Shown: piece after piece, positions 11,325 to 64,000 of the stretch
Layout of the letters: every line of letters begins with the position of its first letter
How positions within the stretch are numbered: position 1 is the first letter of the stretch
NCBI RefSeq assembly: GCF_030028105.1
Contig: NC_092374.1
Span: forward strand, 178,398,057-178,462,056
Source of the DNA: Mobula birostris
Taxonomy: Eukaryota
Direction of reading: 5' to 3'
Length of the DNA: 64,000 nt
The notes under the pieces: generated by a model
Seen by the model: only the letters and a program-made list of their open reading frames with translations
Told to the model about the DNA's origin: nothing
Databases searched by the model: none
Translations under genes and position numbers: made by a program

Positions 11325-11435
11325 GATGTTAAGCAACACACATAAAAATTACTGGTGAACACAGCAGGCCAGGCAGCATCTATAGGAAGAGGTACAGTCA
11401 ATGTTTTGGGCTGAGACCCTTCGTCAGGACTAACT
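11325..11435 (-). mobile_element. Penelope pLTR terminal fragment with a decayed hammerhead motif
   Basis: Similar to the Penelope ends at 42871 and 59080; hammerhead GAAA box mutated to AAAA. Confidence 0.75.
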
Positions 11436-15975: not shown

Positions 15976-16557
15976 ATCATTGGAGTAAATTTCTCCTTCC
16001 TCTGCAGAACTCAACTTATAATTACAGACTCTATCCTCGTTGGGAAGGGGGGGTATTCTCAGCAATCCTCCAGATAAAATTTGCCCAAATCTTCCAAAAC
16101 TTACCAAGCAATGAACCGGGAAATAGACTATTCCCAGTCTGAGGAAGTAACGTACTCTTCCACTCACTGATAACAGGACACTGTGTGGAGAATGGATTAC
16201 TCTTAGTCTGGAATTCCAGCTGCCAATTTCAGGCCAGATTTTCCGAAGACAAGTACAACAGGCTGCTTACCTGAATAGGAAAAATGAAATGGAGATACAG
16301 GAGACTACAGATGCTCAATCGTGGAGCCACAGACAAACTGCTGGAGAATTTCAGTGGTGGGGCATCCGTGGAGGGTGTAGGAGGAACTGGCTGGTTCAGG
16401 AGGAGAGACAACAAGAAACAGGATGAAGCGGATTGTCTTAACTGAGGAGAGGTAAGAAAAACTTCCCATTCAGTTTAATTAAGATGGTAAATATGATTCT
16501 AATAATGTGTGTGTTCGACTTTCTTGACTTTTATAATTAAACAGTCAATAATCCAGC

Positions 16558-16675
16558 ACCACACATCAAAGTTGCTGGTGAACGCAGCAGGCCAGGCAGC
16601 ATCTCTAGGAAGAGGTACAGTCGACGTTTCAGGCCGAGACCCTTCGTCAGGACTAACTGAAGGAATAATCCAGCA
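16558..16675 (-). mobile_element. Short Penelope pLTR fragment carrying an intact hammerhead core
   Basis: Near-identical to the Penelope ends at 59085-59190. Confidence 0.85.
16618..16655 (-). ncRNA. Minimal type I hammerhead ribozyme (Penelope-associated), intact core
   Basis: Minus strand reads UAGUC-CUGACGA-AGG(GUCUCGG)CCU-GAAA-C-GUC-GACUG. Confidence 0.75.
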
Positions 16676-34393: not shown

Positions 34394-34506
34394 GACTCGG
34401 TGTGCTCCATGGAGCAGGTCCCATACTGTGGTTCATAGCTATGTTTGCAATAATTATTGGAGTGATGTAGAGGAGCAGCTTAGAGATAGCTAAGGCATTA
34501 CTACAG
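34394..34506 (+). CDS. Orphan terminal (GPI-signal-like) exon of a paralogous MHC class I-like gene; coding 34394-34470
   Basis: cag acceptor, gt donor, 113 nt, the same length as 63265-63377; encodes GLGVLHGAGPILWFIAMFAIIIGVM*; 50/77 nt identical to the paralog, ungapped; downstream intron 34507-34589 and 3' sequence to about 35115 also align. Confidence 0.7.
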
Positions 34507-39779: not shown

Positions 39780-41000
39780 ATAGTGTAGTCGACAGGGTAT
39801 GTGGGAGAGAAGGGATGCATGAAGGAACGTGGGAGAGCGTACGGGGTGGGGAAGGGTTGGGGAAAGCGTGCGGGGTTAGAGAGCGCTTGGGCGGGACGGG
39901 AGCGCGTGCACGAATAAAGAACGCGCACGTAGGAAAAGGACAGGGTGGGGTGTAAGCAAGTGAGGAAGTGGGGGTTGGGAGAGGGATAGGTGCAGCTTGG
40001 GGAGCAATGAGTTTGCAAGGAAGTCCGCACTGGCGTCTGGCAGTGTATTGTACAGAAGTGTAATCCTAGTTGTCCAGGAGCGAGGGCGCAAGAGACGAGA
40101 TCCGGAGAATCGAGTGCATAGAGACACGTGAATAAGCAGTCGCTAGAATTTAGAGCAGAAACCAAAATTCTGGGGGATCTCGTGTGGAGGGAAGTGGTCA
40201 GTTGACGTTTTGGAATCTTATCTCTACTCTCAGCCCTTCACATAGCCGGCTACCTGCCCTTTACCCTTCCAGTCTAGATGAAGTACTTTGACCCAAAACG
40301 TCGTCTGTGCATTTCCCTTCATAGATGCTGCCTGACCCGTTGAGTTCTTGCATCAGTTTTGTTTTCCAGCAGGGATTCCCAGCCTGGGGTCCATGGCCCC
40401 CTTGCTTAATTATATTGGTCGATGGAATTAAAAAAGATTGGGAACCCCTGTTGTATACAGCGACTGGAGACGGTTTGTGGTGATCATCTCCCGGGAGGGT
40501 CCTGGAAACCTGCCCAGAGATGTGTCAGTGACTGGGTGTTGCTGCCTGCGCCTCTCTGTCGCGGTCTGCATGTGCCCACATCCTTACTGGAAGTGGTTCG
40601 GCTCCGCATCCTCCACTGCACATCCTGTGCCTGGCCGGCTGTCTACCGGCCCGCCTCCCTCCCTCCCTCCCTCCCCCGCTCCCCCCCTCCCCCTCCTCCC
40701 CACTCCAGAGCAGCGGCGGGCTGGTTATTTCTGCAGGAAGATTTTTAGTTACAGGAGTTCTTACTGGCTGCTCCTTGTAGCAGGCACTATTTATCCCCGA
40801 ACTGCCTCCGTGAATCTTATCTGCGCCCGCAGCAGTTTATTGACCAACGAGTAGATTTGTCGAGGTGAGGAGACACCGCAATGGAGAGTTGGAACGGACT
40901 GGGATCTCTCCTTTTCACCATATTGTCTCTCTGCTGTGTTGCGGGAAGCCAGGCAGGTAAGGCGAGGGTGTGTGATGGTTTTAAAGGTCTGGAGCTGCGC
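39780..41000. promoter_or_regulatory. CpG-rich island / probable promoter region
   Basis: Locally retained CpGs in a CpG-depleted background, GC-box-like polypyrimidine tract 40650-40700, candidate donors at 40865 (+) and about 40590 (-). Confidence 0.5.
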
Positions 41001-41249
41001 TTTGGAAACTCACCCCTAATCTTCTAGAGATCCCAGACGTGCCCCCATTAGACTGGAGAACTGGTGCATCACACTCATGTGTCCTACAGAAGAAATCCAA
41101 GATACTGGGGAATTTTTGGAGTCTATAAGTTCGGGATAAAATTATACTGAAAATGTTCAAGTGGCGTTTGAGATCTGTCGCGGGTTCCAAAAGATCTTTT
41201 TTCTCTGTGAACTTTAACGGCAGTAGGCAGGCCAACATAAGGTGCATTA

Positions 41250-41263
41250 CCGCCACCTACTGA
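41250..41263 (-). promoter_or_regulatory. CTCF-like motif
   Basis: Minus strand TCAGTAGGTGGCGG resembles the CTCF core CCASYAGRKGGCRS; adjacent to the CpG island. Confidence 0.35.
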
Positions 41264-42921
41264 GTTGGGGTGTGTAATGAAGAGACAGGAATTATATCCA
41301 CGAAATCACCCCGCCCGCTCCCCCCCCCCGCCACACACACACACCATCACCAAGAAAACCTCAAACAATATCAAAAAGTCTGATGCTCATCACAATGAAA
41401 GTCAATGCTCACTTAAACACATTAGATGGCAGTGGTATCCTAACAAACTTTCCATGTTTACCTGTGTGCCAAAGATCGCAATTTAGCAATGAGAAGTTTC
41501 CTTTCCACCTCTTAGGAGCTGCATTCAAACAATATATGCTGCACTGTTTCTTGACAAATACACTCACTGCAGATGCCAATATCATGCATATTATTCAACT
41601 TAGTATGTCCAATATGTAAATGTGTAAGTAAGACTTCTCTCCTTTTATATCCATCTCCCAGTTGAGTTCCCACCATCCTCTGAATTTTATATAAAAGCCG
41701 TTGTTTTATTCCTTTATCCCAAATGAAAAGGTACTTCACCCATTTCTCCCAGTAATAGTAGAATTTGGGAGATTTAATAGTACCACAACATAATCCAGAT
41801 GCTTGAGATTGAACTTTATCTCGGGTCTTTAAGACCACTGGTGAGGCAACACATCCATAATCAAATACAGATTAAAGCAATATACATTTACTTCAGTGAC
41901 CTCCTACTCACACCCAACTAAGCAACTGAGCACGTTAACGACATTTCTCTGGAATTTTATTCACATGCACTATGCATGTTAGCCTTGTATCCATCTACAT
42001 ACCAACTACAAACATAAAGCTTCACCAGTATCTCTTGTTTAAGTGATGTAATGTAAAGCTTGAGATCATGTGTGGGTGTAATGTTCCTTTCAGTAAAACA
42101 AAATTTAGACTGCCCAAGAGAAAATTTAAACACACACCGACATCACCAGTCTTTCTACTTCATTAATAGCTGCCTGCATTTTCCTAACTATTTAATTTAT
42201 GTCCTTGCCTCTCTTCCACACTGCAGCATTCCTTCATCAGCATATAATGATCTGGAAATATCTAAGCCAACAATTAAGAAGATACCATTAATCATAATAA
42301 AAAGGAGTGGGGTCCCATTCTCTATTTCATACTCCTCAAAAAAAGGTGTTTCTACCCTAACTTGTATCTCCTTATCATTTAAAACATCTACCACTTATTG
42401 CCATCTTTTCCAGGTTAAGCAGCAACCCTTGTGTCCATAACAAATAAGCTCTCTCTAGATCAAAGAAAACTGCCACCACTGGTTCTTTATTAACTTGGGC
42501 CTTAAAAATATCAAATTCCAAACTTAATACCAAGTCCATCATCATTCTTTCTACGAAATCCAGATGGGTATACAGCCTATAGGAAGCCTTGTGATAACTA
42601 TTTGTTCCGTTACCTTACATACATGTGAAATTAGCAAAGTAGGTCTATATAATAATAAGTACTTTATTGATTACAAGAGGGGAAATCTTTCATTACAGTA
42701 GCAGCATTTAAAAACACACAGCAGTGTGCAGACTAACTAGCAATAACGTACAGCATAATAACATACCAATGTTCAATAAAATGCAATAATAATGTATGAA
42801 ATAATAAAGCAGGGACTAATGTACTAGGATGCGTGTTCTGTCACAATGAGATGAATTGTTGTATATGCTTCAAAGTTGCTGGTGAATGCAGCAGGCTAAG
42901 CAGCATCTGTAGGAAGAGGTG

Positions 42922-42959
42922 CAGTCAACGTTTCAGGCCGAGATCCTTCGTCAGGACTA
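42922..42959 (-). ncRNA. Minimal hammerhead ribozyme, GUU cleavage triplet
   Basis: Minus strand UAGUC-CUGACGA-AGG(AUCUCGG)CCU-GAAA-C-GUU-GACUG. Confidence 0.65.
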
Positions 42960-43255
42960 ACTGAAGGAAGAGTGAGTAAGGGATTTGAAAGTGGGAGGGG
43001 GAGAGGGAGATCCAAAATGATAGGAGAAGACAGGAGGGGGAGGGATAGAGCCAAGAGCTGGACAGGTGATAGGCAAAAGGGGATACGAGAGGATCATGGG
43101 ACAGGAGGTCCGGGAAGAAAGACAAGGAGGCGGGGGGGACCCAGAGGATGGGCAAGAGGTATATTCAGAGGGACAGAGGGAGAAAAAGGAGAGTGAGAGG
43201 AAGAATGTGTGCATAAAAATAAGTAACAGATGGGGTACGAGGGGGAGGTGGGGCC

Positions 43256-45370
43256 TTAGCGGAAGTTAGAGAAGTCGATGTTCATGCCATCAGGTTGGAG
43301 GCTACCCAGACGGAATATAAGGTGTTGTTCCTCCAACCTGAGTGTGGCTTCATCTTTACAGTAGAGGAAGCCGTGGATAGACATGTCAGAATGGGAATGG
43401 GATGTGGAATTAAAATGTGTGGCCACTGGGAGATCCTGCTTTCTCTGGTGGACAGAGCGTAGATGTTCAGCAAAGCGGTCTCCCAGTCTGCGTCGGGTCT
43501 CGCCAATATATAAAAGGCCACACCGGGAGCACCAGACGCAGTATATCACCCCAGTCGACTCACAGGTGAAGTGTTGCCTCACCTGGAAGGACTGTTTGGG
43601 GCCCTGAATGGTGGTAAGGGAGGAAGTGTAAGGGCATGTGTAGCACTTGTTCCGCTTGCACAGATAAGTGCCAGGAGGGGATCAGTGGGGAGGGATGGGG
43701 GGGACGAATGGACAAGGGAGTTGTGTAGGGAGCGATCCCTGCGGAATGCAGGGGGGGGGGTGGAGGGAAAGATGTGCTTAGTGGTGGGATCCCGTTGGAG
43801 GTGGCGGAAGTTACGGAGAATAATATGTTGGACCCGGAGGCTGGTGGGGTGGTAGGTGAGGACCAGGGGAACCCTGTTCCTAGTGGGGTGGCGGGAGGAT
43901 GGAGTGAGAGCAGATGTACGTGAAATGGGGGAGATGAGTTTAAGAGCTGAGTTGATAGTGGAGGAAGGGAAGCCCCTTTCTTTAAAAAAGGAAGACATCT
44001 CCATCATCCTAGAATGAAAAGCCTCATCCTGAGAGCAGATGCGGCGGAGACGGAGGAATTGCGAGAAGGGGATGGCGTTTTTGCAAGAGACAGGGTGAGA
44101 AGAGGAATAGTCCAGATAGCTGTGAGAGTCAGTAGGCTTATAGTAGACATCAGTGGATAAGCTGTCTCCAGAGACAGAGACAGAAAGATCTAGAAAGGGG
44201 AGGGAGGTGTCGGAAATGGACCAGGTATACTTGAGGGCAGGGTGAAAGTTGGAGGCAAAGTTAATAAAGTCAACGAGTTCTGCATGCGTGCAGGAAGCAG
44301 CGCCAATGCAGTCGTCGATGTAGCGAAGGAAAAGTGGGGGACAGATACCAGCACGGAACATAGATTGTTCCACAAAGCCAAAAAAAAGGCAGGCATAGCT
44401 AGGACCCATACGGGTGCCCATAGCTACACCTTTAGTTTGGAGGAAGTGGGAGGAGCCAAAGGAGAAATTATTAAGAGTAAGAACTAATTCCGCTAGACGG
44501 AGCAGAGTGGTGGTAGAGGGGAACTGATTAGGTCTGGAATCCAAAAAGAAGCGTAGAGCTTTGAGACCTTCCTGATGGGGGATGGAAGTATATAACGACT
44601 GGACATCCATGGTGAAAATAAAGCGGTGGGGGCCAGGGAACTTAAAATCATCGAAAAGTTTAAGAGCGTGAGAAGTGTCACGAACATAGGCCGGAAGGGA
44701 TTGAACAAGGGGTGATAAAACCGTGTCGAGGTATGCAGAAACAAGTTCGGTGGGGCAGGAGCAAGCTGAGACAATAGGTCGGCCAGGACAGGCAGGTTTG
44801 TGGATCTTGGGTAGGAGGTAGAAACGGGAAGTGCGGGGTGTGGGAACTATAAGGTTGGTAGCAGTGGATGGGAGATTCCCTGAGCGGATAAAGTCGGTGA
44901 TGGTGTGGGAGACAATGGCCTGGTGCTCCTTAGTGGGGTCACGATCGAGGGGTAAATAAGAGGAGGTATCCGCGAGTTGTCGCTGTGCCTCGGCAAGGTA
45001 GAGGTCAGTACGCCAGACTACAACAGCACCCCCCTTATCGGCGGGTTTAATAATAAGGTTAGGATTAGTGCGGAGGGAGTGGAGAGCAGAACGTTCCGAA
45101 GGAGTGAGGTTGGAATGGGAACAAGGTGCGGTGAAGACGAGACGGTTGATGTCCCGTCGGCAGTTAGCGATAAAGAGATCCAGAGCAGGCAGAAGGCCAG
45201 AGCGGGGTGTCCATGAAGAAGAGGAGGGTTGAAGACGGGAGAAGGGGTCATCGGTGGGGGTGGAAGAGTCCTTGCCGAAGAAGTAGGCTCGGAGACATAG
45301 ACGGCGGAAGAAAAGTTCTGCATCATGGCGAACACGGAACTCGCTGAGATGTGGGCGAAGGGGGACAAAC
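43256..45370 (-). pseudogene. Penelope RT + GIY-YIG endonuclease, 5'-truncated, frameshifted near 43680
   Basis: IIKPADKGGAVVV, YLLPKIHK..GRPIVS, MDVQSLYTSIP, GVAMG..GPSYA, RYIDD; then GVIYCVWC..LYIGET..RFAEH. Confidence 0.9.
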
Positions 45371-45961
45371 GTGAGGATCCGGGTCCAACATATTATTCTC
45401 CGTAACTTCTGCCACCTCCAACGGGATCCCACCACTAAGCACATCTTTCCCTCCCCCCCCCCCGCCGCATTCCGCAGGGATCGCTCCCTACACAACTCCC
45501 TTGTCCATTCGTCCCCCCCATCCCTCCCCACTGATCTCCCTCCTGGCATTTATCCGTGTAAGCGGAACAAGTGCTACACATGCCCTTACACTTCCTCCCT
45601 TACCATCATTCAGGGCCCCAAACAGTCCTTCCAGGTGAGGCAACACTTCACCTGTGAGTCGACTGGGGTGATATATTGCGTCTGGTGCTCCCGATGTGGC
45701 CTTTTATATATTGGCGAGACCCGACGCAGACTGGGAGACCGCTTTGCTGAACACCTACGCTCTGTCCGCCAGAGAAAGCAGGATCTCCCAGTGGCCACAC
45801 ATTTTAATTCCACATTCCATTCCCATTCTGACATGTCTATCCACGGCCTCCTCTACTGTAAAGATGAAGCCACACTCAGGTTGGAGGAACAACACCTTAT
45901 ATTCTGTCTGGGTAGCCTCCAACCTGATGGCATGAACATCGACTTCTCTAACTTCCGCTAA
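45371..45961 (+). pseudogene. Penelope GIY-YIG endonuclease fragment (inverted duplicate arm)
   Basis: CKRNKCYTC, GVIYCVWCSRCGLLYIGETRR, E-H..LQPDGMN. Confidence 0.9.
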
Positions 45962-46257
45962 GGCCCCACCTCCCCCTCGTACCCCATCTGTTATTTATTT
46001 TAATGCACACATTCTTCCTCTCACTCTCCTTTTTCTCCCTCTGTCCCTCTGAATATACCTCTTGCCCATCCTCTGGGTCCCCCCCCCCCCTTGTCTTTCT
46101 TCCCAGACCTCCTGTCCCATGATCCTCTCCATATCCTCTTTTGCCTATCACCTGTCCAGCTCTTGGCTATATCCCTCCCCCTCCTGTCTTCTCCTATCAT
46201 TTTGGATCTCCCCCTCCCCCTCCTACTTTCAAATCCCTTACTCACTCTTCCTTCAGT

Positions 46258-46295
46258 TAGTCCTGATGAAGGGTCTCGGCCTGAAATGTGGACTG
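46258..46295 (+). ncRNA. Hammerhead ribozyme motif, probably inactivated
   Basis: UAGUC-CUGAUGA-AGG..CCU-GAAA-U-GUG-GACUG; cleavage triplet GUG and stem III disrupted. Confidence 0.5.
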
Positions 46296-47258
46296 CACCT
46301 CTTCCTACAGATGCTGCCTGGCCTGCTGCATTCACCAGCAACTTTGATGTGTGTTGCTTGAATTTCCAACATCTGCAGAATTCCTGTTGTTTGTTGTATA
46401 TGCTTATTGCATTTGGTAGGAAAGATTTTCTGTAGCAATCCTTATGATGGCTGAGCTGAATGAGTATATTCAAAAAGGTGCTCCACTACTTATTCCGTAG
46501 GTAATGGAGAGGATGTTCCAGATTGTCCATAATGGATAACAGTTTGTTTTATGACCTCCTCTCCACCATTTAGTCAAACGAGTCTGGACTGTAGCCAAGG
46601 CCGGATCCAGCCTTTTTGATGAGTTTATTTAGTCTTTTTGCATCACCAGCTCCAATGCTGCTCCCCCAACAAAAAGCAGCAAAGAAGACTTGCTACAACA
46701 GACTGGTAAAAGATCTACAATATCCTGCTACACACGTTGAAGGATCTCAGCTTCCCTAAATTTCAACCACAATTGACTCATAATCAACCCCAAACTCCAA
46801 AAGTCTACTGTATATGCTATCCCAGTTTTGGCAAATGTAGACACTCCTCCATTGCCCATTTTCCGATCATGGCTTATGTTAACATAACTTTGTATTTTGA
46901 GACTGACAGGATTTCAACCAGGTTTCCTGTACACATGACGTCAAGTTTATTTGGTAAATCTGCAATAAATTTCTTATCCTCTTGACCACTAGCTAACAGG
47001 CTTCTAGAATTCCATTGTAAGATTAAATGCCATTAACAACTCTCTTTTGAAATGTGAACATTTTTACTCCTTGAAAGGCATCATTAATAGCTTCTAGTAT
47101 TTTATGTCAATGTTTTTCTTCTGCTTTTCACATAATTTTAATATTTGTCCTATTTCAGTTTGTGCTGTACAATTTACCACATCTGCCATGACAGTTTATC
47201 AACAATTAGAGAATCCTTTGTTATACAATTATGTACTTTACACAATGCCATTAAACTA

Positions 47259-47876
47259 CAAGAGGTGATTGATAAGTTCGTGGCCTCAGGTTGCAGGAGT
47301 CAGTTTTAGAATACCTAGCACATTTATTTTTCCTACATTTACACACTTAGTCCAACAGTCGTGGAACATACGGATCCCTTCAGTGTAGAAGCCTGTTGGG
47401 CCTCCAGAAAGTGGTCCACGGCACGAGTTATTGATAAGCTCATGGCCTGAGGTAGAAGGAGATATTATTAACTTCAAACTTTCTGCATTTTCACTCAAAG
47501 AGTTGAACTGCACGTGCATGCAACAAGAGCTGTATAACCCATCTCCTTCTACCTAAGGCCACAATCTTAACAATCACCCCTGCTGTGGACCACCTGGAGG
47601 TCCAAGACGCTCTCGTTACATGCACGTGCAGTTCAACTCTTTGAGTGATAATGCAGAAAGTTTGAAGTTAATAAATCCGCTCCTTCTCCCTTAAGCCACG
47701 AAGTTATCAATCACCCCTGCTGTGGACCACTTCTACAAAGAAGGGATCTGTATGCTCCACGACCGCTGGACTATGTGTGTACATGTAGAAGAGGACTATG
47801 TTGAAAAATAAATGTGCTCGGTTTTCTAAAATTGACTCCTTCTACCTTAGGCCATGAACTTGTCAATCACACCTTG
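47259..47876. mobile_element. Tc1/mariner-derived MITE, nearly palindromic, TA TSD
   Basis: TA-caagaggtgattgataagttcgtggcct.. versus ..aggccatgaacttgtcaatcacaccttg-TA; internal inverted repeats (47493-47520 vs 47619-47647). Confidence 0.85.
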
Positions 47877-48539
47877 TATCTGCATTCTGGATATTAATAG
47901 ATCCCATTGATACTGTCTTCTATATTTTCTGCAGAGCCTCTGCATATGATATACCTATTTCCACCTGAAAATGCTGCCACTTCCACAACATTATGCAGGA
48001 CATCTTGGATAATCAGAGCTACATTTTCCTCCACAGTTGCTACAAATCCTTAGTTACTGTGATTGATTTATATTGGAAGCAGATCCACATTCAAACCTCA
48101 ACAAAACCTTAAACTCTTCCTTCCTTCTTTTATTTAAATCCTATCTACTGCCTTCATCACTGGAAGATAAGCCTCTACAATCTTCAATAAGCTATTTATT
48201 TTTCCATTTCCCAGAAATCTGCCATTTGACCTCCTCCAGTCGCTACCTCTGAGATCCCCGTCACTTCCTGCCATCTCTACCCCCTTCCTGTCTGAGAGAA
48301 AACTCCCAACAGTGGGCTTAGTCCATTGTTCCAACCCCAATCAGCTTAATTAGCTTGGTGGATGACTTGCGAGCGTACGCAAACCTTCCCAGCCCCTCAA
48401 ATGCCCAAAGATGACAGCCGCATCACCTTAACACAGACATCACACTACAACAATTAATCTAATCTTAACTGCACCATTAAGACAGTCTGTTACACGTCAC
48501 CAAGGAAATAGATTTTGTTCAACCCAAAGACCTTGCCTT

Positions 48540-51060
48540 CCTTTCTTTTTCAATGTCTTTATTAATTTCATAGAATATAAACATAACATAGTGTACGGGG
48601 TCTTTCTTTTGTTACATTTAAAATGGCGACTTTGTTATGTTAATCTGGGGAATGCGGCTTTGTTGTGCTTTAACGCTGAAGAGAGTTTGCGCTAGCAGTT
48701 TGTTTTACTTTAAATTGAGATAGCAGCCTTCTATTAGCCAATGGGTGGTTATGTATCGTTTTGTTTTCGGATACCATGCTGTATTTGAATGACTGTGGAC
48801 GGAGTTTTGGCAGGGAGTCGGAGGAGAGACGAGGAGGACGGAGGAGAGACGGGGGGTGGTCGGAGGAGAGATGGGGGGGTTGTGGAGAGACGGGGAGGAC
48901 AGCGGACATGTGGAGAGGCTCCGGTCGATCACTCCGGGTGGTCCCAAGCCGTGAGTCGACGGAATTCGGGTGGTCGTCAGGAATCGATTGAGCTCCAACG
49001 ATAGCGCACGAAGAACGTGGACTTTGATAAGTGTTGGCGCCTTATTTTTCTATTACTTTCCTCTCTGTATCAAATGTATATTAATGTCATAGAATTAGTA
49101 ATATCTATAAAGTGTACTTGTTAAAATTTACTGGGTGTGCTGGCTGATGATTGATGTTGTGATTGATTCGGGCGGCGACCAACCGTGTGGGGAGTGTTGA
49201 GGCGGGTGCTGGGCTGGATTTCCCCTAGACATACACGAGCTAATATAACTGAATTTTACAATAGCAATAATACAACATTGTTGGGAATACATTGTTATAC
49301 TTAAGATGGGTAATTATAAAACCAAATAGTATTTCATTGACAAAATTCCCAATCATGTAGGATACCAATGAATAACACAGGTCAAAAAAAATTATCTAAA
49401 CAAAAATCATGAAAAAGGAAAAAAAATAAAAACAAACCTCCACCCCCCAAAAAAAATAATCCAAACAGAATTAATCAACTAAACTAAAAAAGACATGGGC
49501 AATTTTAACAACGTAAAAATGGAAGAAAAGAAAACCTTAGTGTCGATGACTCCGTTCCTCTCAACCAACACTACAGAGAAGTAAAATAAGTTTGGAAATG
49601 GTCAAATTACATCATATGAAAATGCTGAATAAATGGCCTCCAAGTTTTTTCAAATTTAATGGAAGGGTCATAAACCACACTTCTAATTTTTTCCAAATTT
49701 AAACACAACATGGTTTGTGAAAACCAGTGAAATACAGTAGGAGGGTTAATCTCTTTCTAATTCAGCAAAATGGATGTTCTAGCCATTAAATAAAGAAATG
49801 CAATCATCTGATGAGCTGAAGAGGTTAAATGATTTGAGCCTATCATTGGTAATCCAAAAATAGCAGTAATTGGGTGAGGTTGTAAGTCTGTATTCAAAAC
49901 CATTGAAATAATATCAAAAATATCTTTCCAATATTTTTCCAACAAAGGACATGACCAAAACACGTGAGTTAAAGAAGCTATCTTGGAATGACATCTATCA
50001 CATTTTGGATTAATATAAGAATAATAACGAGATAGTTTATCTTTGGACATATGAGCCCTATGCACTACTTTAAACTGTATCAACACATATAGAGAATGAA
50101 TTAACCAATTGAAGAATTTTTCCCATTTTTCAATTGGTATAGTAATCTTAAATTCTCTTTCCCAATCAGTTTTAATTTCATTGGAAACATCAGGACATAA
50201 ATTCATAATTAGGTTCTAAATAATTGCTACAACATTTTTCTGAGACAGATTTAGATCTAAAATTTTTTCTAAAATATCCATTGGATATAAATGTGGAAAA
50301 TTAGGAGAAACAGTAATTATAAAGTTTCTGATCTGTAGGTATCTAAAAAAGTGAGATCTAGGTAAATTATATTCATTGGAAAGTTGATCAAAGGACATGA
50401 AACAATTATCCAAAAATAAATCACGAAAACGTACTATACCTTTGATTTTCCAATCAAAGTAACTTGGTCCATAGTGGAAGGTTGAAAAAGGAAATTAGAT
50501 ATAATAGGGCTTGCTAAAATAAATTGATTGAACCCAAAAAATCTTTGGAATTGAAACCATATACATAAAGTATGCTTAACCATTGGATTATTCATTTGTT
50601 TATACAATGTAGAAGAAATAAAAGGAAGCAAAGTTCCTAAAACCGAACCCAAAGAAGACCCTTGTAATGAATTACATACAAGATTTACCCAATGTGGACT
50701 TGAAGTTGCATCCAAATCTCGTAACCAAAATTTTAAGTATCGGATATTAATTGCCCAATAATAAAATCTAAAATTCGGGAGGGTGAGCCTCCCCTCTTTT
50801 TTAGATTTCTGTAAATACCTTTTACCTAGCCTAGGATTTTTTTTCTGCCATATATATGAGGAAATTTTTGAATCAACATTATCAAAAAAAGATTTTGGGG
50901 TAAAAATTGGAACCGATTGAAATACATATAGAAATTTAGGCAAAATAATCATCTTAATAGCATTAATCCGACCAATCAAAGACAAAGCTGTTGGTGACCA
51001 TTTAGTAAACAAGAGTTTAATCTGATCAATTAAAGGTAAAAAATTAGCTTTAAATAAATC
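48540..51060 (-). mobile_element. L1 3' portion (post-RT ORF2, zinc knuckle, 3' UTR), interrupted by a solo LTR
   Basis: LIGRINAIKMIILPKFLYVFQ..LPNFRFYYWA (50434-51012), CDRC..SLTHVFWSC (49757-50206). Confidence 0.9.
48592..49260. mobile_element. Solo LTR, 669 bp, 4-bp TSD ATAG
   Basis: TGTA..TACA ends; ATAG at 48588-48591 and 49261-49264. Confidence 0.9.
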
Positions 51061-51769
51061 TCGCCCTCCTCATTGGTCCGCATGCCTGTAATGGACCAAA
51101 TGGCCTGTCTTTGTGTGGTCTGGCTATACGATGTTAAGAACTTTACTCTCATTCGTCAAAAATGATGCTTGCTCGATTGTGACAATATCTTGACCAAACG
51201 TATGGTGTTTTCCCTGAATGTAGTCATTAACTGAGGAAACGCAGCTGCTAATCTGTAAACATCAAGATCCTTTGAAGTATTTTGTGATGTCCTGTTTGGC
51301 TTTTGGTGACATTAGTTGAGAGCTCCTATGAATGTTGTGTGGGGGAGGTAACTTGCTAATTAGAGCCATGGTTTACCTGCAGAGGCAGACAGGGTCTCCA
51401 CCTAACCTAACACCTCTCCCAATGCACTGTTCCCTCAGAGGCTTAAGTATCAAGCGGGGCAGAAATGTGACGATCTTTAGTGTGGGAGGTGAGCGTGTGA
51501 CCCACAAAACCACAGCTGGGACACCAATTCAAGATGGTTGGTGTAGCAGCTGGCAAAACTGTGAGATCGGGGGTCAGCTTCCACTGCTGTCAGTAAGGAG
51601 TTTGTATGTTCTCCCCGTAACCTTGTTACTTTCCTCCGGATGCTGTGCTTTGCCCCCATTGTCCAAAAATGTATGATTTAGGATTAGTGAGTTGTGGCCA
51701 TGCTATGTGGACACTAGGAATGCAGGAACACTTACCGGATGCTCAACAGCTGTTTTAATTTGATGCAAT

Positions 51770-52500
51770 CTGCATTCAAAGGTTCAAAAGGACATTTAAT
51801 GTCAGAGAAATATTACAATATACATCCTGAAATGCTTTTTCTTTGCACCTATCCACGAAAACAGAGGAGTGCCCCAAAGAATGAACAACAGTTAAATGTC
51901 AGAACCCCAAAGTCCCCCTCAGCTCCCCTCCTTCCCGCACATCAGCGGCAGCAAGCAACAATCCCCCCTTCCCCCCACCGGCAAAAAAAATCTGCACCCA
52001 CCACCGTGCACTCGAGCGTGAACAAGACAACAGTAAAGACAAAGACTTGCAGTGCAGTACTCCAAAGACTACATTGTTCACCCAGCATTTGACATACCAC
52101 AGGCTCTCTCTCTCCCTAATAAAGGAGAAATGCTGTCTCTGTTTCACGGCGAGAGGGGAGATATAACAAACAACTCACTAGTTTACGACATTAAAAGTCC
52201 CGTTGCGTTTTATTTTTACGAGCTCTGAGCCCAAAGATCTCAGGTCTCTGGGCACACAGCCGTAGATCTTCCGACTCTCCTGACGACACACGGATCTCCT
52301 GCCGTGACACCGACTTTCGATCCGCCGCTCTCCAGAGCCCTGAGATCCTAGGCCTCTAAAGACAAGCTGAAATCTTAGGCTGGAGCCCTTGGCGTGCCGA
52401 ACCGCGGCCAGTTGTGAAACTCGAGAATGGGTCCCTCTCCCACAAAGAACCATAGTCAGCAAGTAACTGCAGGTCAGGGTCTTCAAAAGGACCCTGAAAG
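51770..52500 (-). mobile_element. Non-autonomous retroposon-like repeat
   Basis: Architecture resembles the reverse complement of the 17480/28915 family, with a (tttgaa) tail near 51775. Confidence 0.5.
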
Positions 52501-52608
52501 GGAAAAATAAGATATATTAAAGATGGAAATACTGTAGAGCTGTTTCCGAAGAGGCAAACAAAGGAGTCACCGTTAGGCGCCATATTTTCCTATGTTTGAA
52601 AGTGTATG

Positions 52609-53811
52609 TGTAACCCAGGTTAATTAAACCCAAAGACGTAATGTTAGAAAGTTCCACCTGCGGAGGGATGAAAATGAAGTTTACCAAAGAGAACTTGGAA
52701 AAAAAAAATGCTGTGCGAGAACAAGGCGTGGCTGACGCAGGCACGGGAGGAGAGAGAAACGCAGAAACGATTAGAAGCTGAAGACACTAACTGTTAAGAG
52801 TGGAATTATTAGTGCGTAGCTTTACCCTAGTAACTCGACAATCTCAGGGTGAAACCCCTGCAGAAGAGACAATAGTGATCAAAGATTTATTGAAGCTATG
52901 GCTATAACATGCAGCAGCAAAAACGGTACAATATCAGCAGAGGCGAGTGTCCAAGATCTCTACCGTGTAACTGGACATTAGTTTTATAAAATCATACCAA
53001 GGGATTCGGTCAAGTTTTTGTGCAAGTTTGTGAATTGACTTGCCGTGGATGATAAACTATATTAGTCCAATGAGCCAAGAAAGAAGATGGTGAGCTACTC
53101 AAGATTCAATGAGCCAGCGCAGGAACGAAATGTGTAATGACGCAAAGGATTTAATATGGTTGGATGTGTAAATTCATTTTCATTCAAAGAATCCAAATTA
53201 GATTTTCTGAAAGAACTGATTATTTACAAAGACTTTGATAAGTCGCTGAATGAGATTTACTTTGTTTAAAAGTTCTAAAGTTGCAGAATTACGAAAGGGA
53301 TTAAACCGTATATATAACTTTTGAATTTCAGTTTAAACTTGTAGATACACTGGAACTGAAACTGAAGTTAATTATAATACTTAAAAATGGGAATTATGTT
53401 TGGTTTTCTAACTAACTAGGGATAAGTAAAAAGGAAAAGGTTGTCCGTAAACTTTTAAATAGGGAACTACACTAGATCTAATTAGTTCGAGAAATTAGAG
53501 TCATAAAGGAATCTCACTGATTCTAATTAAAAAGGAATTTGTTTTGGTTTGATATCTGAGATTTAGAACCTAAACAGAACGTTGGAATTTTGAATTGTTC
53601 TTGCTCATGTAAATAGTTTGTACATATTGTTGTTTTCATATAAACAGAACTTATCTCCAGAAGTATGTGGTTTCTATTCACTGCCTCCTTCCGATACCTA
53701 GAAGCTTCTGATGGCCTACTAGCACCCAGTGTAGTACTATGTAATTTGATTTTCTCAACGAGTGCAGCGACTAGTCGCACACAATAAGACAGGTGCTACA
53801 GTGGTGTTACA
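52609..53811. mobile_element. Solo LTR, 1203 bp, 4-bp TSD TATG
   Basis: Perfect TGTAAC..GTTACA ends; TATG at 52605-52608 and 53812-53815. Confidence 0.9.
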
Positions 53812-54514
53812 TATGTGGTAAATGAAGCTTCATTTTAAAAATATTTTATTTGCTTTATTCACTCATGGACGTGGATTCACAAAGTGAACCACTGTTTAGT
53901 TCCCCAACCCAAGATGTCCTTGAGAAGGTGGCTGGTTGCTGCCTTTTTGAACTGGTGCTGTACTCGAGCTGTGGATATATCCACAATGGTGTTCAGGTCC
54001 AGATAGTACTAAGTCTATGCTCTCTCAATTTTGGACAAGCCCTCAGTTAGTCAGTGTCAAGAGTGGTTGCTACATCCTCACAGCACAGAAGCAGGCACTT
54101 AGACCCAACAGGTCCATGTCAGCCAAGATTACCATCCAACTTGGCTCATTTGACTCATATCCCTCTAAACATTTCCTATCTGTGTACCTATCCAAGCATC
54201 TTCAATAGTGATACCCAAGTTGCTCAATAGTTTGGAGGATTGGGACCCTTCATTTTCTGTCCCCACTGCAGTTGGGTTCTTCTATCCAGAGCTGCTTAGG
54301 ATTTATACCTGGCTGATGCAGTGAGGCCTGTTTTAGTGTTGGTGGTTCCACGTGGATGGGGAGCCAATCACAGGGGTGAGGTGGGTGCCTAATTTGTGTG
54401 CCTGTGCATTAATTTGGGCAAGTGGAGAGTCTTCCACCAGAGTTTTGCCTTATAAATGGAGGGCATCCTTAGATATTTTCTCACACTCCTCTCTCACTCT
54501 CTTCTTTTTTTCAG

Positions 54515-54763
54515 TCTCCCACAGCTTGACATATTTCTACCTCCATTCGATAAACATTCCTGAGCTGCCATACATCTCCATGGTTGGGATGTTGGATGAC
54601 CTGCAGATATGCTACTATGACAGCACCATCCAGAGGGTAGAAGCCAAGCGACAGTGGATCATGGACGGCTTTTCAGCTAACGACTGGAAAAACCAGAAAG
54701 AGATCCCGGACGCAATTAAAAAGTTACTTCCTCCTAATCTGACTCCATTCGCCTCGATGCTTG
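54515..54763 (+). CDS. MHC class I-like heavy chain, alpha1 exon (phase 1-1, 249 nt)
   Basis: Polypyrimidine tract + cag acceptor, G|gtacgt donor; (V)SHSLTYFY..P..VGMLDDLQICYYDS..R.W..DW matches the class I alpha1 pattern. Confidence 0.9.
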
Positions 54764-57169: not shown

Positions 57170-57439
57170 GCATCAGATACATCCAGGGGCTTCTGGGCTG
57201 CACGCAGTCTGCAAATACATTCAAAACCTTCCTCAAGATTGGCTGCCAAGATTTAGGAGAGCTCATTTGTGACTTCACTACCGGGAAGTGTATTACCACT
57301 GGTGTCCTGATGTTGGTCAATGATTATCTTCAGCAAGTTAATATTGCTGATATTCCTGAAATTTATATGCTGAACAGTAGCTGCATCCAGTATTTGAAGA
57401 AAGGTCTTCGGCTTGGCAGAGAGGAGCTTGAAAGGCAAG
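57170..57439 (+). CDS. MHC class I-like heavy chain, alpha2 exon (phase 1-1, 270 nt; not in the ORF track)
   Basis: cctttccag acceptor; open frame GIRYIQGLLGCTQSANTFKTFLKIGCQDLGELICDFTTGKCITTGVLMLVNDYLQQVNIADIPEIYMLNSSCIQYLKKGLRLGREELERQ with Q96, G100-C101, C164 and a class I end motif; G|gcaagt GC donor. Confidence 0.88.
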
Positions 57440-58224
57440 GCAAGTGGAACATCTGATTACATACTGTAAGCTCTGTGAGGGAACTCCTGCTTCAGACAAT
57501 TGATGGACTCCTGATCTGAGATGTTCAGGGGTGTCTTGACACAAATGGATGGGATCAGCCTGATTCTGAGTTTGTGAGAGAGTTTTTGATTCAGCACAAT
57601 GAGGGGACTCACAATCGAAGTGACATGACCAAATTTGGTGAGCAGTGTTCTGGTCTAAGAAGATGAGAGAGGTCCCAATCTGCGACACTGGGGGATCTCC
57701 CAATTCTGAATGGTGAGCAATGTCCTTATCTGGGGTGAAGGGTACCTCAACTGAAGGTGACTAATGATGTCCAAGTCAAGGATTGTGTTGGAACTTCTAT
57801 TTAGACACAGTAACAGATCTCCCAATCCAGGACATTGAGGGCATCTCTTGATCAGGAATTTTGAAGGATCTCCCAATTAAGGCTGGTAAACTAAACTTAA
57901 TTTGGGGTGATTATGGCATGATCAATCTTGGAATATGAGGTAATATTGACTTGGGACTATGGGTGACATAAAGATTGGTAACGGTGGCTGTAACCTTGAT
58001 CTAGGCCTGTCAGATGAATGAAAATTACTGCTGGCTATGGTCTGCATGGACTTGAGCTGAGGAGATGATTTCGGGCAGGATAGTGATTAATGGTGAGGTA
58101 GGTCCTGGTCTGAGGCAGTAAAGAGTAAGAATCCCACTCTTGGACACTGTAACTTCCATTTGTAATGGTAAGATAATATAAGTTTGTGTTGACTTAGTGA
58201 CGTTAATTCTTCATTCTTCCCTAG

Positions 58225-58500
58225 TTGCTCCAGAGGTTCAGGTGTTGAAAAAGAGGCCAACAGCTACTGAGGGCGAGAGTCTGTCATGCATCATCACTCC
58301 CTTCTACCCCCGTGCTATCAACGCCACTTGGCTGAAGAATGGACAGGTTGTCTCCAAGGGCTACGAGGTGACCGTGCTACCAAACTACAATGATACATAC
58401 TGGATGGAACTAGTCATTGAGCTGCAGGATAATGATACGAATATCTATACCTGTCATGTCAAGCACAGCAGCCTGCCGGGGGCACTGATGGTGCAGGGAG
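58225..58500 (+). CDS. MHC class I-like heavy chain, alpha3 (Ig-C1) exon (phase 1-1, 276 nt)
   Basis: ttccctag acceptor, G|gtaggt donor; VAPEV..LSCIITPFYPRAINATWLKNG..TVLPNYNDTY..YTCHVKHSSL Ig-C1 motifs. Confidence 0.93.
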
Positions 58501-59140
58501 GTAGGTCATCGTACGGTACAGAATTTGCTTCATTCTGTTGTGGTGGCTCATAAATTCATACAGTACTGAAGGAGGCCATTTGGCTCACCACATACATGCT
58601 GACCCTCTGGTGCCAGTCTATTCCAACCAGTACTTGGTCTGTACTTCGGCCTTCTCTTCCTCGATGATTCAAGTGCTTGTCAGAATTATGATATGAAAAT
58701 TGATCTTTTGCACAGCAGTACAGTGCAAAGACATAAAAGGCGTATGAGCTTAGAACATGGACCAACTCATGAAATTATGATACTGTAGCTATAGGTGAGA
58801 TTTACTAGCTGGAGGGAAGACTGCCAGCCCAAGGTGCGTGGATGAGAAGAGTATGTAGGTCTAGACCCAGGTGTGGATTGAAGGGAATAAGCAAAATGGC
58901 ATTTTGACAGACTAGATGGGCCAAATGGACTGCTTCTGTGCTGTAGTGCTCCATGACTGAAAGATAACATAAATTATAAAATGAAGTAATTAGTGCAAAA
59001 ATTGGAATAATGAGGTTGTGTTCATGGGTTCATGACTATTCATGAATGGTAGAAGAAAAGAAGATGTTTCTGATTAGTGCAACACACATAAAAGTTGCTG
59101 GTGAACGCAGCAGGCCAGGCAGCATCTCTAGGAAGAGGTG

Positions 59141-59178
59141 CAGTCGACGTTTCAGGCCGAGACCCTTCGTCAGGACTA
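59141..59178 (-). ncRNA. Minimal type I hammerhead ribozyme, intact core
   Basis: Minus strand UAGUC-CUGACGA-AGG(GUCUCGG)CCU-GAAA-C-GUC-GACUG. Confidence 0.75.
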
Positions 59179-60767
59179 ACTGAAGGAAGAGTGAGAAAGG
59201 GATTTGAAAGTTGGAGGGGGAGGGGGAGATCCAAAATGATAGGAGAAGACAGGAGGGGGAGGGATAGAGCCAAGAGCTGGACAGGTGATTGGCAAAAGGG
59301 ATACGAGAGGATCATGGGACAGGAGGTCCGGGAAGAAAGACAAGGAGGGCGGGGGGACCCAGAGGATGGGCAAGGGGTATATTCAGAGGGACAGAGGGAG
59401 AAAAAGGAGAGTGAGAGAAAGAATGTGTGTATAAAAATAAGTAACAGATGGGTTACGAGGGGGAGGTGGGGCATTAGCGGAAGTTAGAGAAGTCGACGTT
59501 CATGCCATCAGGTTGGAAGCTACCCAGACGGAATATAGAATGAAAAGCCTCATCCTGAGAGCAGATGCGGTGGAGACGGAGGAATTGCGAGAAGGGGATG
59601 GCATTTTTGCAAGAGACAGGGTGAGAAGAGGAATAGTCCAGATAGCTGCGAGAGTATTGCCTTCCCGCAATTCCTCCGTCTCTGCCGCATCTGCTCTCAG
59701 GATGAGGCTTTTCATTCTATGACGAGGGAGATGTCTTCCTTTTTTAAAGAAAGAGGCTTCCCTTCCTCTACTATCAACTCTGCTCTTAAACGCATCTCCC
59801 CCATTTCACGTACATCTGCTCTCACTCCATCCTCCCGCCACCCCACTAGGAATAGGGTTCCCCTGGTCCTCACCTACCACCCCACCAGCCTCCGGGTCCA
59901 ACATATTATTCTCCGTAACCTCTGCCACCTCCAACGGGATCCCACCACTAAGCACATCTTTCCCTCCCCGCCTCTCTCTGCATTCCGCAGGGATCGCTCC
60001 CTACGCAACTCCCTTGTTCATTCGTCCCCCCCCATCCCTCCCCACTGATCTCCCTCCTGGCAGTTATCCGTGTAAGCGGAACAAGTGCTACACATGCCCT
60101 TACACTTCCTCCCTTACCACAATTCAGGGTCCCAAACAGTCCTTCCAGGTGAGGCAACACTTCACCTGTGAGTCGGCTGGGGTGATATACTGCGTCTGGT
60201 GCTCCCGATGTGGCCTTCTATATATTGGTGAGACCCGACGCAGACTGGGAGACCGCTTTGCTGAACACCTACGCTCTGTCCGCCAGAGAAAGCAGGATCT
60301 CCCAGTGGCCACACATTTTAATTCCACATCCCATTCCCATTCTGACATGTCTATCCACGGCTTCCTCTACTGTAAAGATGAAGCCACACTCAGGTTGGAG
60401 GAACAACACCTTACATTCCATCTGGGTAGCCTCCAACCTGATGGCCTGAACATCGACTTCTCTAACTTCCGCTAAGGCCCCACCTCCCCCTCGTACCCTG
60501 TCTGTTACTTATTTTTATGCACACATTCTTTCTCTCACTCTCCTTTTTCTCCCCCTGTCCATCTGAATATACCTCTTGCCCATCCTCTGGGTCCCCCCCC
60601 CCTTGTCTTTCTCCCCAGACCTCCTGTCCCATGATCCTCTCATATCCCTTTTGTCAATCACCTGTCCAGCTCTTGGCTCCATCCCTCCCCCTCCTGTCTT
60701 CTCCTATCATTTTGGATCTCCCCCTCCCCCTCCAACTTTCAAATCCCTTACTCACTTTTCCTTCAGT

Positions 60768-60805
60768 TAGTCCTGACGAAGGGTCTCGGCCTGAAACGTC
60801 GACTG
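60768..60805 (+). ncRNA. Minimal type I hammerhead ribozyme, intact core
   Basis: UAGUC-CUGACGA-AGG(GUCUCGG)CCU-GAAA-C-GUC-GACUG; stem I UAGUC/GACUG, stem II AGG/CCU, palindromic ACGU stem III. Confidence 0.78.
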
Positions 60806-61749
60806 CACCTCTTTCTAGAGATGCTGCCTGGCCTGCTGCGTTCGCCAGCAACTTTGATGTGTGTTGCTTGAATTTCCAGCATCTGCAGGATTCCTGCTGT
60901 TTCTGATTAGTGTCTTCTTTGTGAGTCCTGTACCTTTTCCCTGATTGCATTAAAGGAGAAGAGGGCATGTCCCAGATGGCAAGGGTCCTGAGTACTGGAT
61001 GCCACCTTCTTGAAGCACTACCGCTTGAAGATGTCTTCGGTGGTGGGGTGGTTTCTGCCCTTGATGGAGCTGACTGTGTCAACAATTCTCTGCAGCTTCT
61101 TATACTTCGTAGATATCAAAATAATTTTTAAACGCTGTGAGAATGTCTGCCTATACCAGCCCCTTAGGCCGCTAGCCCATTAATCAAAAAAAAACTTCTC
61201 TCTATTCTCTCTAAATCTCTTAATCCTTGCCTTAAACCTACCTCTACAATAATAAGCAACTCTGCCATGGGGAAAAGTTTGCTGCTGTTTTATAAAAGAA
61301 ATTAAGCAGGAGCAGTATACAAACTACTGCAGTAAAAAAAAAGCTTTGTTCTTTCAGCATTTTGTACATTTTTCCTTTCAATGCCCCTAACAATTTTGTA
61401 TAATGCCATCAGCTCCTCTCACAACCTCCTCCCATTCAGGGAAATCAAACCCAGTCTCTTCACTGAAACACTGCATCCCAATAAATTCCTGGTGAATCTC
61501 CTGTGTACTCTGTTCCATGCAATCAAATTGTTCCTCTGGGTTGGTGACTGAAAATGCATCAAGTACTTGGGATGTAGCGTAGGTAATGTTTTGTAAAGCT
61601 GTTCCATAATTTCCTTGGTCTTGTATTCTGTGCCCATATTAATGAACACTCGTACCCTGTACACTTTGTTCATCACTATACCTACCTCTTTGACTGACCT
61701 GATGATGTATCTCCTCAGTAAAGCTGCACCAGAGCTTCACAGAACACCA

Positions 61750-61995
61750 TGGTAGTGTAGTTCAGAGTTCAGTTCCAATACCCTCTGTAAGAGTTTGTAT
61801 GTTCTCTCCATGAACTGCCTGGATATCCTCTGGCTGCTCCGGTTTCCTCCCATAGTCCACAGACGTACCAGCTAGTGGGTTAATTTGTCATTGTAAATTG
61901 CCCTATGATGAGGCTGGTGTTAAATAGGTGGGTTGTTGGGTGGTGCAGTGCATTGGTCCAGCAGGGGCTGGTCTGTACTGTATCTCCAAATAAAA
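61750..61995 (+). mobile_element. V-SINE-like SINE
   Basis: gagtttgtatgttctctcc..gctccggtttcctccca core and ctgtatctccaaataaaac tail. Confidence 0.7.
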
Positions 61996-62889
61996 CAAAT
62001 TATATTTTATGCCCTGATTAATAAATCCTGTAGGCTTTCTTTACCACCCTGTCTATCACTTTGAAAGAGCTGATCAAGTAGCTCCATTCTTCTCTTACAC
62101 GCCTCTGAACGTTTCTTTCTTCAAAAAACATGTCCCATGTTCTTGCTGAAAGTTATTATTTACAAGGTTACAGTATCTTCAGATTTTCTCTTGTTTGTGT
62201 TCAGTCGTAAGAAGCAATTATGAGTTATGGGCCAAAGAAACATAATAGACGCTCAAGGAAAGAAACAACTGAGAAGTGATTCGGCCTATGGGTCAAGACC
62301 TTCCTGGCTGAGAAATGACTGATATTCAGAGAAGTCATAGACCCTTACCGAACAAAAACAGGCCCATCTGCACAACTGGTCTATGCCAACCAAGATTCCT
62401 AACATGGCCCATATACTACCAAACATTTCCTGTCTATCTACTGGTTCCAGTGATTTTTTTTTGTTTAAAATGTTGTTAATGTAGCTGCCAAAACCATTTT
62501 CTCTTGCATCTCCTTCCCTGTGCTGACAACTTCTGCTTGAGAATGTTGGCCCTCCGGTTTCTATTATATTTTTCACTAATCACCTTAAACCTTTGTCCTA
62601 AAGTTCCTGATGCCCAAATCCTGGAAAAGAGATTGTGCGTTCATCCTCTCTATGCTCTTTATGATTTTATACGTTATTCTATATATCTCAACCTCTTACA
62701 TTCAAGGGAAAATAATGGCAAGCTATGCTACTTCCCCTTCTAATTCAAGTGTACCTTTCTTGGCAACATCCTTGAGAATATTTTGTACACCTTTTCCAGT
62801 TTAATGACTTCCTTCCTTTGTCAATATGCATAAGATCACCCCATTCTCCTCAGCTCCAGTGAATAAGACATCGCCCGCACCATACATGC

Positions 62890-63247
62890 TTTCTTCTTCC
62901 CCCATCTTCTGCTGAGCAGAAGGTAAGGAAGCCTGAAAGCACACACTGATGATCAAGGACAGCTTCTATTTTGCTGTTATAACAGTATTGTAGAGTTCCA
63001 TAGTACGGCACATTTAACCTTTGATGTCACGATCAACCGTATTGTGGCCCTTGCTCCTTACTGTGTGCCTGCTCTCTACTTCCTCTGTAACTGTTACAAG
63101 TTGCTTTGCATTCTGTTATTTTTGCCCCTTGTATTATCTCAATGTGCAATTGTAATGCAATTATCTGTGGATGGCATGCAGTACAAAGATTTTTCAGTGT
63201 ACCTTGGTACATGTGACAACAATTTAAAATATTACCAATTTACCAAT
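62890..63247 (+). mobile_element. L2-type LINE 3' fragment immediately upstream of the terminal exon acceptor
   Basis: gcctgaaagcacac..caaggacagcttcta motif and (ccaattta) tail ending at about 63247. Confidence 0.65.
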
Positions 63248-63264
63248 CTTTACTTGGTGAGTAG

Positions 63265-63377
63265 GAGCCGGGGAGCCTCGTGGTGCAGGTCCTTTGCTGG
63301 GGCTGATGGTGACACTTACGATGATGATTAAAGTGGTGTAGAGGAGCAGCAAGGAGAGAGTCAAGACTTTAGTGCAG
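63265..63377 (+). CDS. MHC class I-like terminal coding exon (hydrophobic tail, stop at 63339-63341) followed by a 3' UTR intron
   Basis: tag acceptor in phase 1, in frame with alpha3; encodes GAGEPRGAGPLLGLMVTLTMMIKVV*; donor gtgggt at 63378, acceptor ttttgcag at 63462; structure conserved in the paralog at 34394. Confidence 0.68.
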
Positions 63378-64000
63378 GTGGGTAAACACGCAGGTCCTTT
63401 CACTAATCCTGCTTGCCGTCACAGTATTGCTCAACCAATCTCTTCTCGTTTTCCTTTTGCAGGTGGGTGTTTGGCCCAAATCTCAAGCTCAGCTCTGAAC
63501 ACAAGCTGGATCCTCTGCCTGGTTTTGTGATTAATGGTTCAACACTTAAGCAAGCTTAGTGTTGGCTCCAGTGCGGGAAATGCTTAGCTGAATCTTCTGC
63601 CACCTTACAGCTCGTCTGTTTTGCAATGTTATAACTTTTTCTTACATCTCACTCAGCGATCAGGTTTCAGTGTTGTGGTGTGTTGAAGTTTCAACTTCTC
63701 ATTCGTAAAGCCCTACTTGACCTGAATAGCTCTTCCCAACCCTAACGCCAATGCAATACTGTATATCAGACCATTGGTGTGAGGAACTACTGCCAAGGCA
63801 AGTTAGTGGGATAAAGCAGTGGAAGATTTACTGGGCATTTGGAAAGACCTGAATGGAAGAGTGAATTCCTGTTGTGAACTCTGGATACCTAAGAAGAATT
63901 CTTCCCTTAATATGAGATTGGGAGGGTCCAACATTTTCTTTAAAATAGGAACAGAAACCCCTGTATATTGGTGCAATTTGGGTTGATGTAGAGTTAAAAA

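Follow-up and report, generated by a model that had tools for sequence, protein, structure and literature searches.

We find that the 77 nucleotides at 63265-63341 of a 64,000-nucleotide stretch of the Mobula birostris genome (hereafter the window) make up the coding portion of the final coding exon in an intact class I-like gene, which is confirmed by RNA contigs. Because alpha3 is joined to this exon and the TAG stop is retained in the mRNA, the protein terminates in a hydrophobic segment of 15 residues, without any cytoplasmic part. As judged from sequence comparison, the gene is a batoid (devil-ray) copy of UFA, an elasmobranch nonclassical MHC class I lineage. The tail exon is predicted to act as a glycosylphosphatidylinositol (GPI) attachment signal, and GPI anchoring is in our view the best reading of this ending, with a probability of roughly 0.6.

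Gene structure and transcripts

Five exons splice into one open frame of 315 aa (Table 1), with canonical splice sites throughout, apart from the GC donor that follows alpha2. The protein shares 95.6% identity with a M. birostris RefSeq protein (P0151) and 84% with a protein of Hemitrygon akajei, and possesses an N-terminal signal peptide, as judged by eye and by orthology; its leader exon was located by tblastn with Mobula and Hemitrygon orthologues. The donor of alpha2 is the GC at 57440-57441 (CAAG/GCAAGT), giving a junction that agrees with P0151 (...ELERQ/VAPEV), and the orthologous RefSeq proteins imply that this donor is the one in use. An alternative GT donor for alpha2 at 57403/57404 was rejected, as it would remove ...GLRLGREELERQ, which is present in all orthologue proteins.

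Table 1 Features of the class I-like gene and of the second tail exon in the window
Feature	Positions	Strand	Basis
Paralogous tail exon, LGVLHGAGPILWFIAMFAIIIGVM then stop	34394-34470	+	sequence comparison, tblastn
Leader exon: ATG and signal peptide MESWNGLGSLLFTILSLCCVAGSQA, one split-codon base, GT donor	40881-40956	+	tblastn, sequence read, spliced translation
alpha1 exon, phase 1, AG acceptor, GT donor	54515-54763	+	tblastn, spliced translation
alpha2 exon, GC donor	57170-57439	+	tblastn, spliced translation
alpha3 exon, Ig C1-set domain, ends ...LPGALMVQG	58225-58500	+	sequence comparison, Pfam, RNA contig coverage
Tail exon, coding part (the finding)	63265-63341	+	sequence read, RNA contigs, spliced translation, GPI-layout rule
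Same exon after the stop, 3'UTR, frame reads RSSKERVKTLVQ	63342-63377	+	sequence read; end 63377 from RNA joint
3'UTR intron, 85 nt, GT..AG, begins 36 nt past the stop	63378-63462	+	RNA joint
Last exon, 3'UTR, exceeds the window end	63463-64000	+	RNA contigs continuous to 64000

The coding part of the tail exon reads AGEPRGAGPLLGLMVTLTMMIKVV in frame 3, and is composed of (G)AGEPRGAGP, followed by LLGLMVTLTMMIKVV and a TAG at 63339-63341. An AG acceptor at 63263-64 precedes it, and alpha3, which after its final Gly codon carries one further base, fits the tail exon in phase 1, the split codon g/ga encoding the Gly before the tail. The transcript evidence consists of assembled contigs from four runs (X1-X4) of one study, placed on 58150-64000. 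Contigs of X1, X2 and X4 join 58500/63265 (joint 58498>63263, cut +2) across a GT..AG intron, skipping 4764 nt, and among the RNA contigs none joins alpha3 to any other exon within this 4.76-kb intron. The junction from alpha3 to 63265, which the original prediction had proposed from the letters of the window, is thereby established, with no contig leading into a different transmembrane or cytoplasmic exon; the 315-aa frame and these contigs likewise bear out its claim of a tail-less class I-like heavy chain comprising alpha1 to alpha3. Contig depth is zero over the unique parts of the introns, which indicates that the contigs represent transcripts rather than DNA. The TAG is retained in the contigs, and within the tail RNA and genome differ only by one substitution that replaces Val with Ala (63310) and one that is silent (63335).

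The same three runs also join 63377/63463 (joint 63372>63458, cut +5), splicing out an intron that lies wholly in the 3'UTR. Readthrough of the stop codon and a donor upstream of the stop were considered and rejected, since the RNA contigs use only the 63377 donor. Read on past the stop, the exon resembles the basic beginning of a cytoplasmic tail that has since been lost, and 63342-63377 is probably a remnant of such a juxtamembrane cytoplasmic start. A contig from the remaining run, X3 (58408-58781), continues from alpha3 into the intron and includes a change at 58500. Given its six mismatches and a 1-nt deletion in alpha3 (at 58478), this contig probably derives from another copy, either a divergent one or the unspliced transcript of a paralogue.

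A second tail exon lies upstream of the gene in the window. It differs from the first at 27 of 77 nucleotides, with 16 nonsynonymous and 3 synonymous codon changes, yet its TAG stands at the homologous codon, and its frame and GPI-like pattern are intact; the second tail, its identical stop position and the number of differences are exactly as originally predicted. The similarity extends further, such that 34368-35118 (tail exon, 3'UTR intron and 3'UTR) shares 73% identity with 63238-64000. This copy had been described as a paralogue, which holds for the homology of the tail but not for a full gene, as only the tail exon and 3'UTR (34368-35118) are present in the window, and tblastn with six family proteins detected no alpha1-alpha3 exons for it in 1-34 kb. 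The copy is a relic, or else it terminates a gene whose last intron is very long.

The existence of this copy bears on the proposal that the ending as a whole is that of a decaying pseudogene, the shared stop being a disabling mutation inherited by duplicated relics. The lack of alpha1-alpha3 exons in the 34 kb upstream of the second copy, and the difference in post-stop frame between the two copies in the window, are in keeping with such decay. However, the gene at issue has a complete 315-aa open frame with good splice sites, is transcribed and is correctly spliced, and the same end is kept by 24 full-length relatives in 16 species. We therefore regard decay as highly improbable.

Family identity and conservation of the tail-less end

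Among sequences in the PDB, the closest to alpha3 is 8gm8_A (3e-23, with the next match at 2e-16), and the same chain is the only significant match to alpha2 (4.6e-8), chicken CD1 being second and non-significant. Over 263 aa, the window protein is 39.9% identical to nurse shark UFA (8GM8; E 3e-72). A Foldseek search using the AlphaFold model of the Mobula orthologue (mean pLDDT 67) likewise returned 8gm8 as its top match (1.4e-23), an entry titled 'shark nonclassical MHC class I, UFA', with the UGA structure 9ch4 being much more distant (24-26% identity). In a tree of 27 family rows and only two outgroup class I chains, from which UGA was left out, the window protein and shark UFA form one clade against the two other class I chains, with support of 94/99. 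P0175, the nurse shark protein, is nested within the family, and the topology roughly follows the species tree and includes a well supported batoid clade. One further protein (P0082) was tried as a relative of UGA (9CH4) and rejected as unrelated.

Pfam matches the C1-set domain of alpha3 at 3.7e-13, while the profile for CD1-type molecules (PF16497) scores 22.4 bits, under its cut-off of 35, and so does not assign the protein to CD1; PF00129 scores 25.3, under its cut-off of 28.3. In the literature, UFA is described as a CD1-like, MHC-linked class Ib molecule, whose structure and bound lipids resemble those of CD1d (PMC10751288, PMC12562908), and it is located in the MHC-Ib cluster beside UDA and UEA (PMC10751288). 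Marker genes that would place the present gene in this cluster were not found within the window. Taken together, the PDB, Foldseek, tree and literature evidence points to a known lineage and not to a new system, and the suggestion in the original prediction of an independently evolved stress-ligand-type system is not upheld, given that the gene belongs with UFA and has kept a C1-set alpha3 domain, unlike ULBP and RAE-1.

The tail-less end is common to the family. All 24 full-length relatives retrieved, from 16 species of sharks, skates and rays, finish at one shared position of the alignment, their last residues forming a short hydrophobic run that no cytoplasmic residues follow (sharks sampled include Cetorhinus, Carcharodon, Mustelus, Pristiophorus, Heterodontus, Chiloscyllium and Heptranchias, and batoids include Amblyraja, a second skate-like sequence, Pristis, Hypanus, Hemitrygon and Mobula). 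Nurse shark UFA belongs to a family whose full-length shark orthologues share this end, whereas the crystallised construct of 8GM8 stops before the tail and is consequently uninformative on anchoring. In genomic DNA of the basking shark (L001) and thorny skate (L002), the TAG stands at the same codon as in the window, and is followed by a conserved stretch and a GT donor, at 42 and 41 nt past the stop respectively, compared to 36 nt in the window ray. The end shared by 16 species, together with the shared TAG and donor, argues that the truncation and the 3'UTR intron predate the split of sharks and rays, which we estimate at roughly 300 million years ago. The in-frame text past the stop, which is RRGAMRREAR in the skate, is not kept in frame between copies. 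In all cases examined, fewer than 50 nt separate the stop from the final exon junction, and by the usual rule the mRNA should therefore escape nonsense-mediated decay.

The window gene differs from nurse shark UFA in being a batoid copy, and in rays two sublineages can be distinguished: a single-copy one ending in '...MMIKVV', which includes the window gene, and an expanded one ending in '...IIFGVM'. Among the matches, sharks possess one UFA gene per species, while Mobula and Hemitrygon each possess at least five or six. Published remarks refer to UFA as single- or low-copy, and so it appears that rays have expanded the lineage. The NCBI models for rays (among P0003, P0167 and P0166) also include isoforms of 231 aa that skip alpha2 and retain the tail, as well as a Narcine isoform (P0166) in which a hydrophilic end replaces the tail, and which may be a secreted variant.

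The putative C-terminal signal and competing readings

Throughout the family, a conserved Gly-x-Gly/Ser lies two residues past the last Ig strand, followed by a 7-residue spacer that ends in Pro, and then by 13-15 uncharged hydrophobic residues (21 in skates), with which the chain ends. In the window protein these elements are G291-A-G, the spacer EPRGAGP and 15 hydrophobic residues with nothing beyond, although this copy has a Lys three residues from its C-terminal end. G291 is nearly invariant in the family, the next residue is Ala, Val or Leu, and the one after that is Gly or Ser. It is this Gly, the candidate omega residue, that is encoded across the 58500/63265 junction, and Ala and Gly follow it. 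Under a crude and untrained layout rule of our own (small-x-small 4-9 residues before a 13-21-residue uncharged C-terminal run), 25 of 26 family members pass, compared to 2 of 151 other proteins, one of which is in fact a mis-modelled family member; in 19 of those 25, the spacing is 7 residues. A GPI-signal layout, first noted in the window alone, is hence a property of almost the entire family sampled. Moran and Caras (1991) reportedly found that GPI addition requires no more than a tail-less C-terminal hydrophobic domain and, about 10 positions before it, small residues.

Considered as membrane spans, the tails are weak. In the best 19-residue window, family tails reach Kyte-Doolittle values of 1.5-2.2 and summed Hessa free energies of +0.05 to +5.8 (a crude estimate, with approximate Hessa values), whereas three class I chains with true spans reach 2.4-3.0 and -1.3 to -4.2 on the same scales, and continue for 23-82 residues past the span. 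In the AlphaFold model the last strand occupies residues 286-289 (LMVQ), and the terminal helix covers only 13 residues (302-314), at low confidence. It is the combination of a conserved GPI layout with a weak membrane span that leads us to place GPI anchoring above either a short anchor or a secreted fate.

Several features count against the GPI reading. The residue at omega+1 is Val in most paralogues, the window copy carries the near-terminal Lys mentioned above, and the position of the candidate omega Gly, two residues past the last Ig strand, would leave almost no flexible linker. Additionally, with Kyte-Doolittle maxima near or above the classical threshold of 1.6, the tail might still pass as a membrane segment, and in skates the uncharged run of 21 residues, with a free energy of about 0, could span the membrane. 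These last two observations are also those expected of a tail-less type I membrane protein, in which the 15-residue hydrophobic end, perhaps together with the GAGP stretch, would serve as an uncleaved short anchor, with a partner protein, or the thin membranes of the ER and Golgi, possibly helping to stabilise it. The descent of the exon from a transmembrane exon, to which the basic post-stop frame and conserved donor point, is likewise consistent with such an anchor. However, in sharks and rays the hydrophobic run extends just 13-15 residues past the conserved Pro, the free energy in most species (+1.2 to +5.8) is far from that of real class I spans given above, no basic anchor flanks the run, and a short anchor does not account for a conserved small-x-small motif at the spacing that a GPI signal needs. 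On balance, we consider an uncleaved short anchor unlikely, while still giving it appreciable weight as the principal competitor of the GPI reading.

Alternatively, so weak an end may neither anchor the chain nor receive GPI, in which case the protein would be released, shed, or both retained in the ER and degraded there, or would be endosomal in the manner of CD1e. The hydrophobicity of the tail is indeed marginal, one NCBI model (the Narcine isoform P0166) has a hydrophilic end in place of the tail, and the X3 contig reads from alpha3 into the intron. Yet that contig, with its 1-nt alpha3 deletion and six mismatches, probably belongs to another copy, and the hydrophobic pattern, length and stop are kept in all elasmobranch orders sampled, which would be unexpected for a dispensable tail. 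A secreted or intracellular fate consequently appears to us quite improbable.

Under GPI anchoring, the reading we prefer, the signal peptide would bring the chain into the ER, where its short hydrophobic end would retain it transiently in the membrane. GPI transamidase would then cleave at the conserved G291, just past the last strand of alpha3 and with Gly or Ser at omega+2, and would put a preformed GPI in place of the cleaved end. Once mature, the alpha1-alpha3 chain, presumably paired with beta2-microglobulin, would reside on the outer leaflet without a cytoplasmic sorting motif, and could be shed from there. This ending probably arose once, when an ancestral transmembrane/cytoplasmic exon acquired a nonsense mutation, the old cytoplasmic exons having turned into 3'UTR.

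The literature searched, which excluded the primary UFA paper, contains no statement on UFA as a GPI-linked molecule or on its membrane anchor. A search of a language-model atlas with the last 30 residues gave scores of at most 0.79, under the level at which the tool regards them as meaningful; one of these matches, to 'NKG2D ligand 3' (0.73, likewise under that level), bears on ULBP and RAE-1 and is to be taken as a lead only.

Comparison with known systems and implications

ULBP1-3 and RAE-1 are class I-like, GPI-anchored NKG2D ligands that lack alpha3 and do not bind beta2-microglobulin. The ray protein differs from these in retaining a C1-set alpha3 domain, and is for that reason not a ligand of the ULBP/RAE-1 type. 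By analogy, it is Qa-2, not ULBP, that is the closest mechanistic analogue. In Qa-2 (H2-Q7/Q9), alpha1-alpha3 is complete, a stop falls in the transmembrane exon, and the chain closes with a short hydrophobic C-terminus in place of a cytoplasmic tail. The ray gene resembles it in having its stop inside the transmembrane exon and its former cytoplasmic exons as spliced 3'UTR, a likeness that concerns mechanism only. By descent the two are unrelated, Qa-2 being a peptide-presenting molecule that branched off from classical class I recently, within rodents, whereas the truncation in rays and sharks predates the split between them and affects a molecule of lipid-binding type. Furthermore, mouse Qa-2 is established as a GPI-linked truncated class Ib molecule (PMC2483932), whereas GPI linkage is predicted here.

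The comparison with CD1 is of a different kind. Known CD1 molecules are type I membrane proteins, the tails of CD1b, CD1c and CD1d carry a tyrosine sorting motif, and CD1-type molecules are thought to need cytoplasmic tails in order to reach lipid-loading compartments. The ray protein, in contrast, ends at its hydrophobic segment, without the transmembrane span and cytoplasmic tail of CD1. UFA is nevertheless described as CD1-like in its binding region, and as a binder of lipids of the CD1d type (PMC10751288, PMC12562908).

It is possible, at what we judge to be a little short of even odds, that UFA has been an obligately GPI-anchored lipid-presenting molecule of CD1 type since before the shark-ray split. 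If so, UFA would be the first case of a CD1-kind antigen-presenting molecule that lacks any cytoplasmic sorting signal, and its sampling of lipids would be limited to secretory, surface and raft-recycling routes. This would suggest that the tail-directed endosomal sampling performed by tetrapod CD1 is a later addition or a separate solution. Moreover, if UFA has been both tail-less and GPI-linked for approximately 300 million years, then lipid presentation in the oldest jawed vertebrates would follow a different trafficking logic.

The UFA family, its crystal structure and RefSeq models with the exact ending described here are already public, and GPI-linked class Ib molecules are known. What is new is the transcript proof of the junction in a ray, and the finding that the TAG and 3'UTR intron are ancestral to elasmobranchs, along with an explicit prediction, made from sequence, of a GPI signal with a candidate omega site. 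The gene model is also now fixed, with its GC donor, its 3'UTR intron and a leader exon 13.5 kb upstream, at the far end of an intron 1 (40957-54514) that owes its length to repeat insertions. Copies of one repeat, at 88-97% identity, are found at 59079-60902 and 42870-46392 (in introns 4 and 1, respectively), and also at 11331-11435 and 16552-16665, and RNA contig depth over these copies is 10^4-10^5, compared to approximately 16 on the exons of the gene. Positions 1-22000 of the window contain many long, reverse-transcriptase-like retroelement ORFs (e.g. 18966-20174 and 5701-7068 on the minus strand), which are ordinary interspersed repeats.
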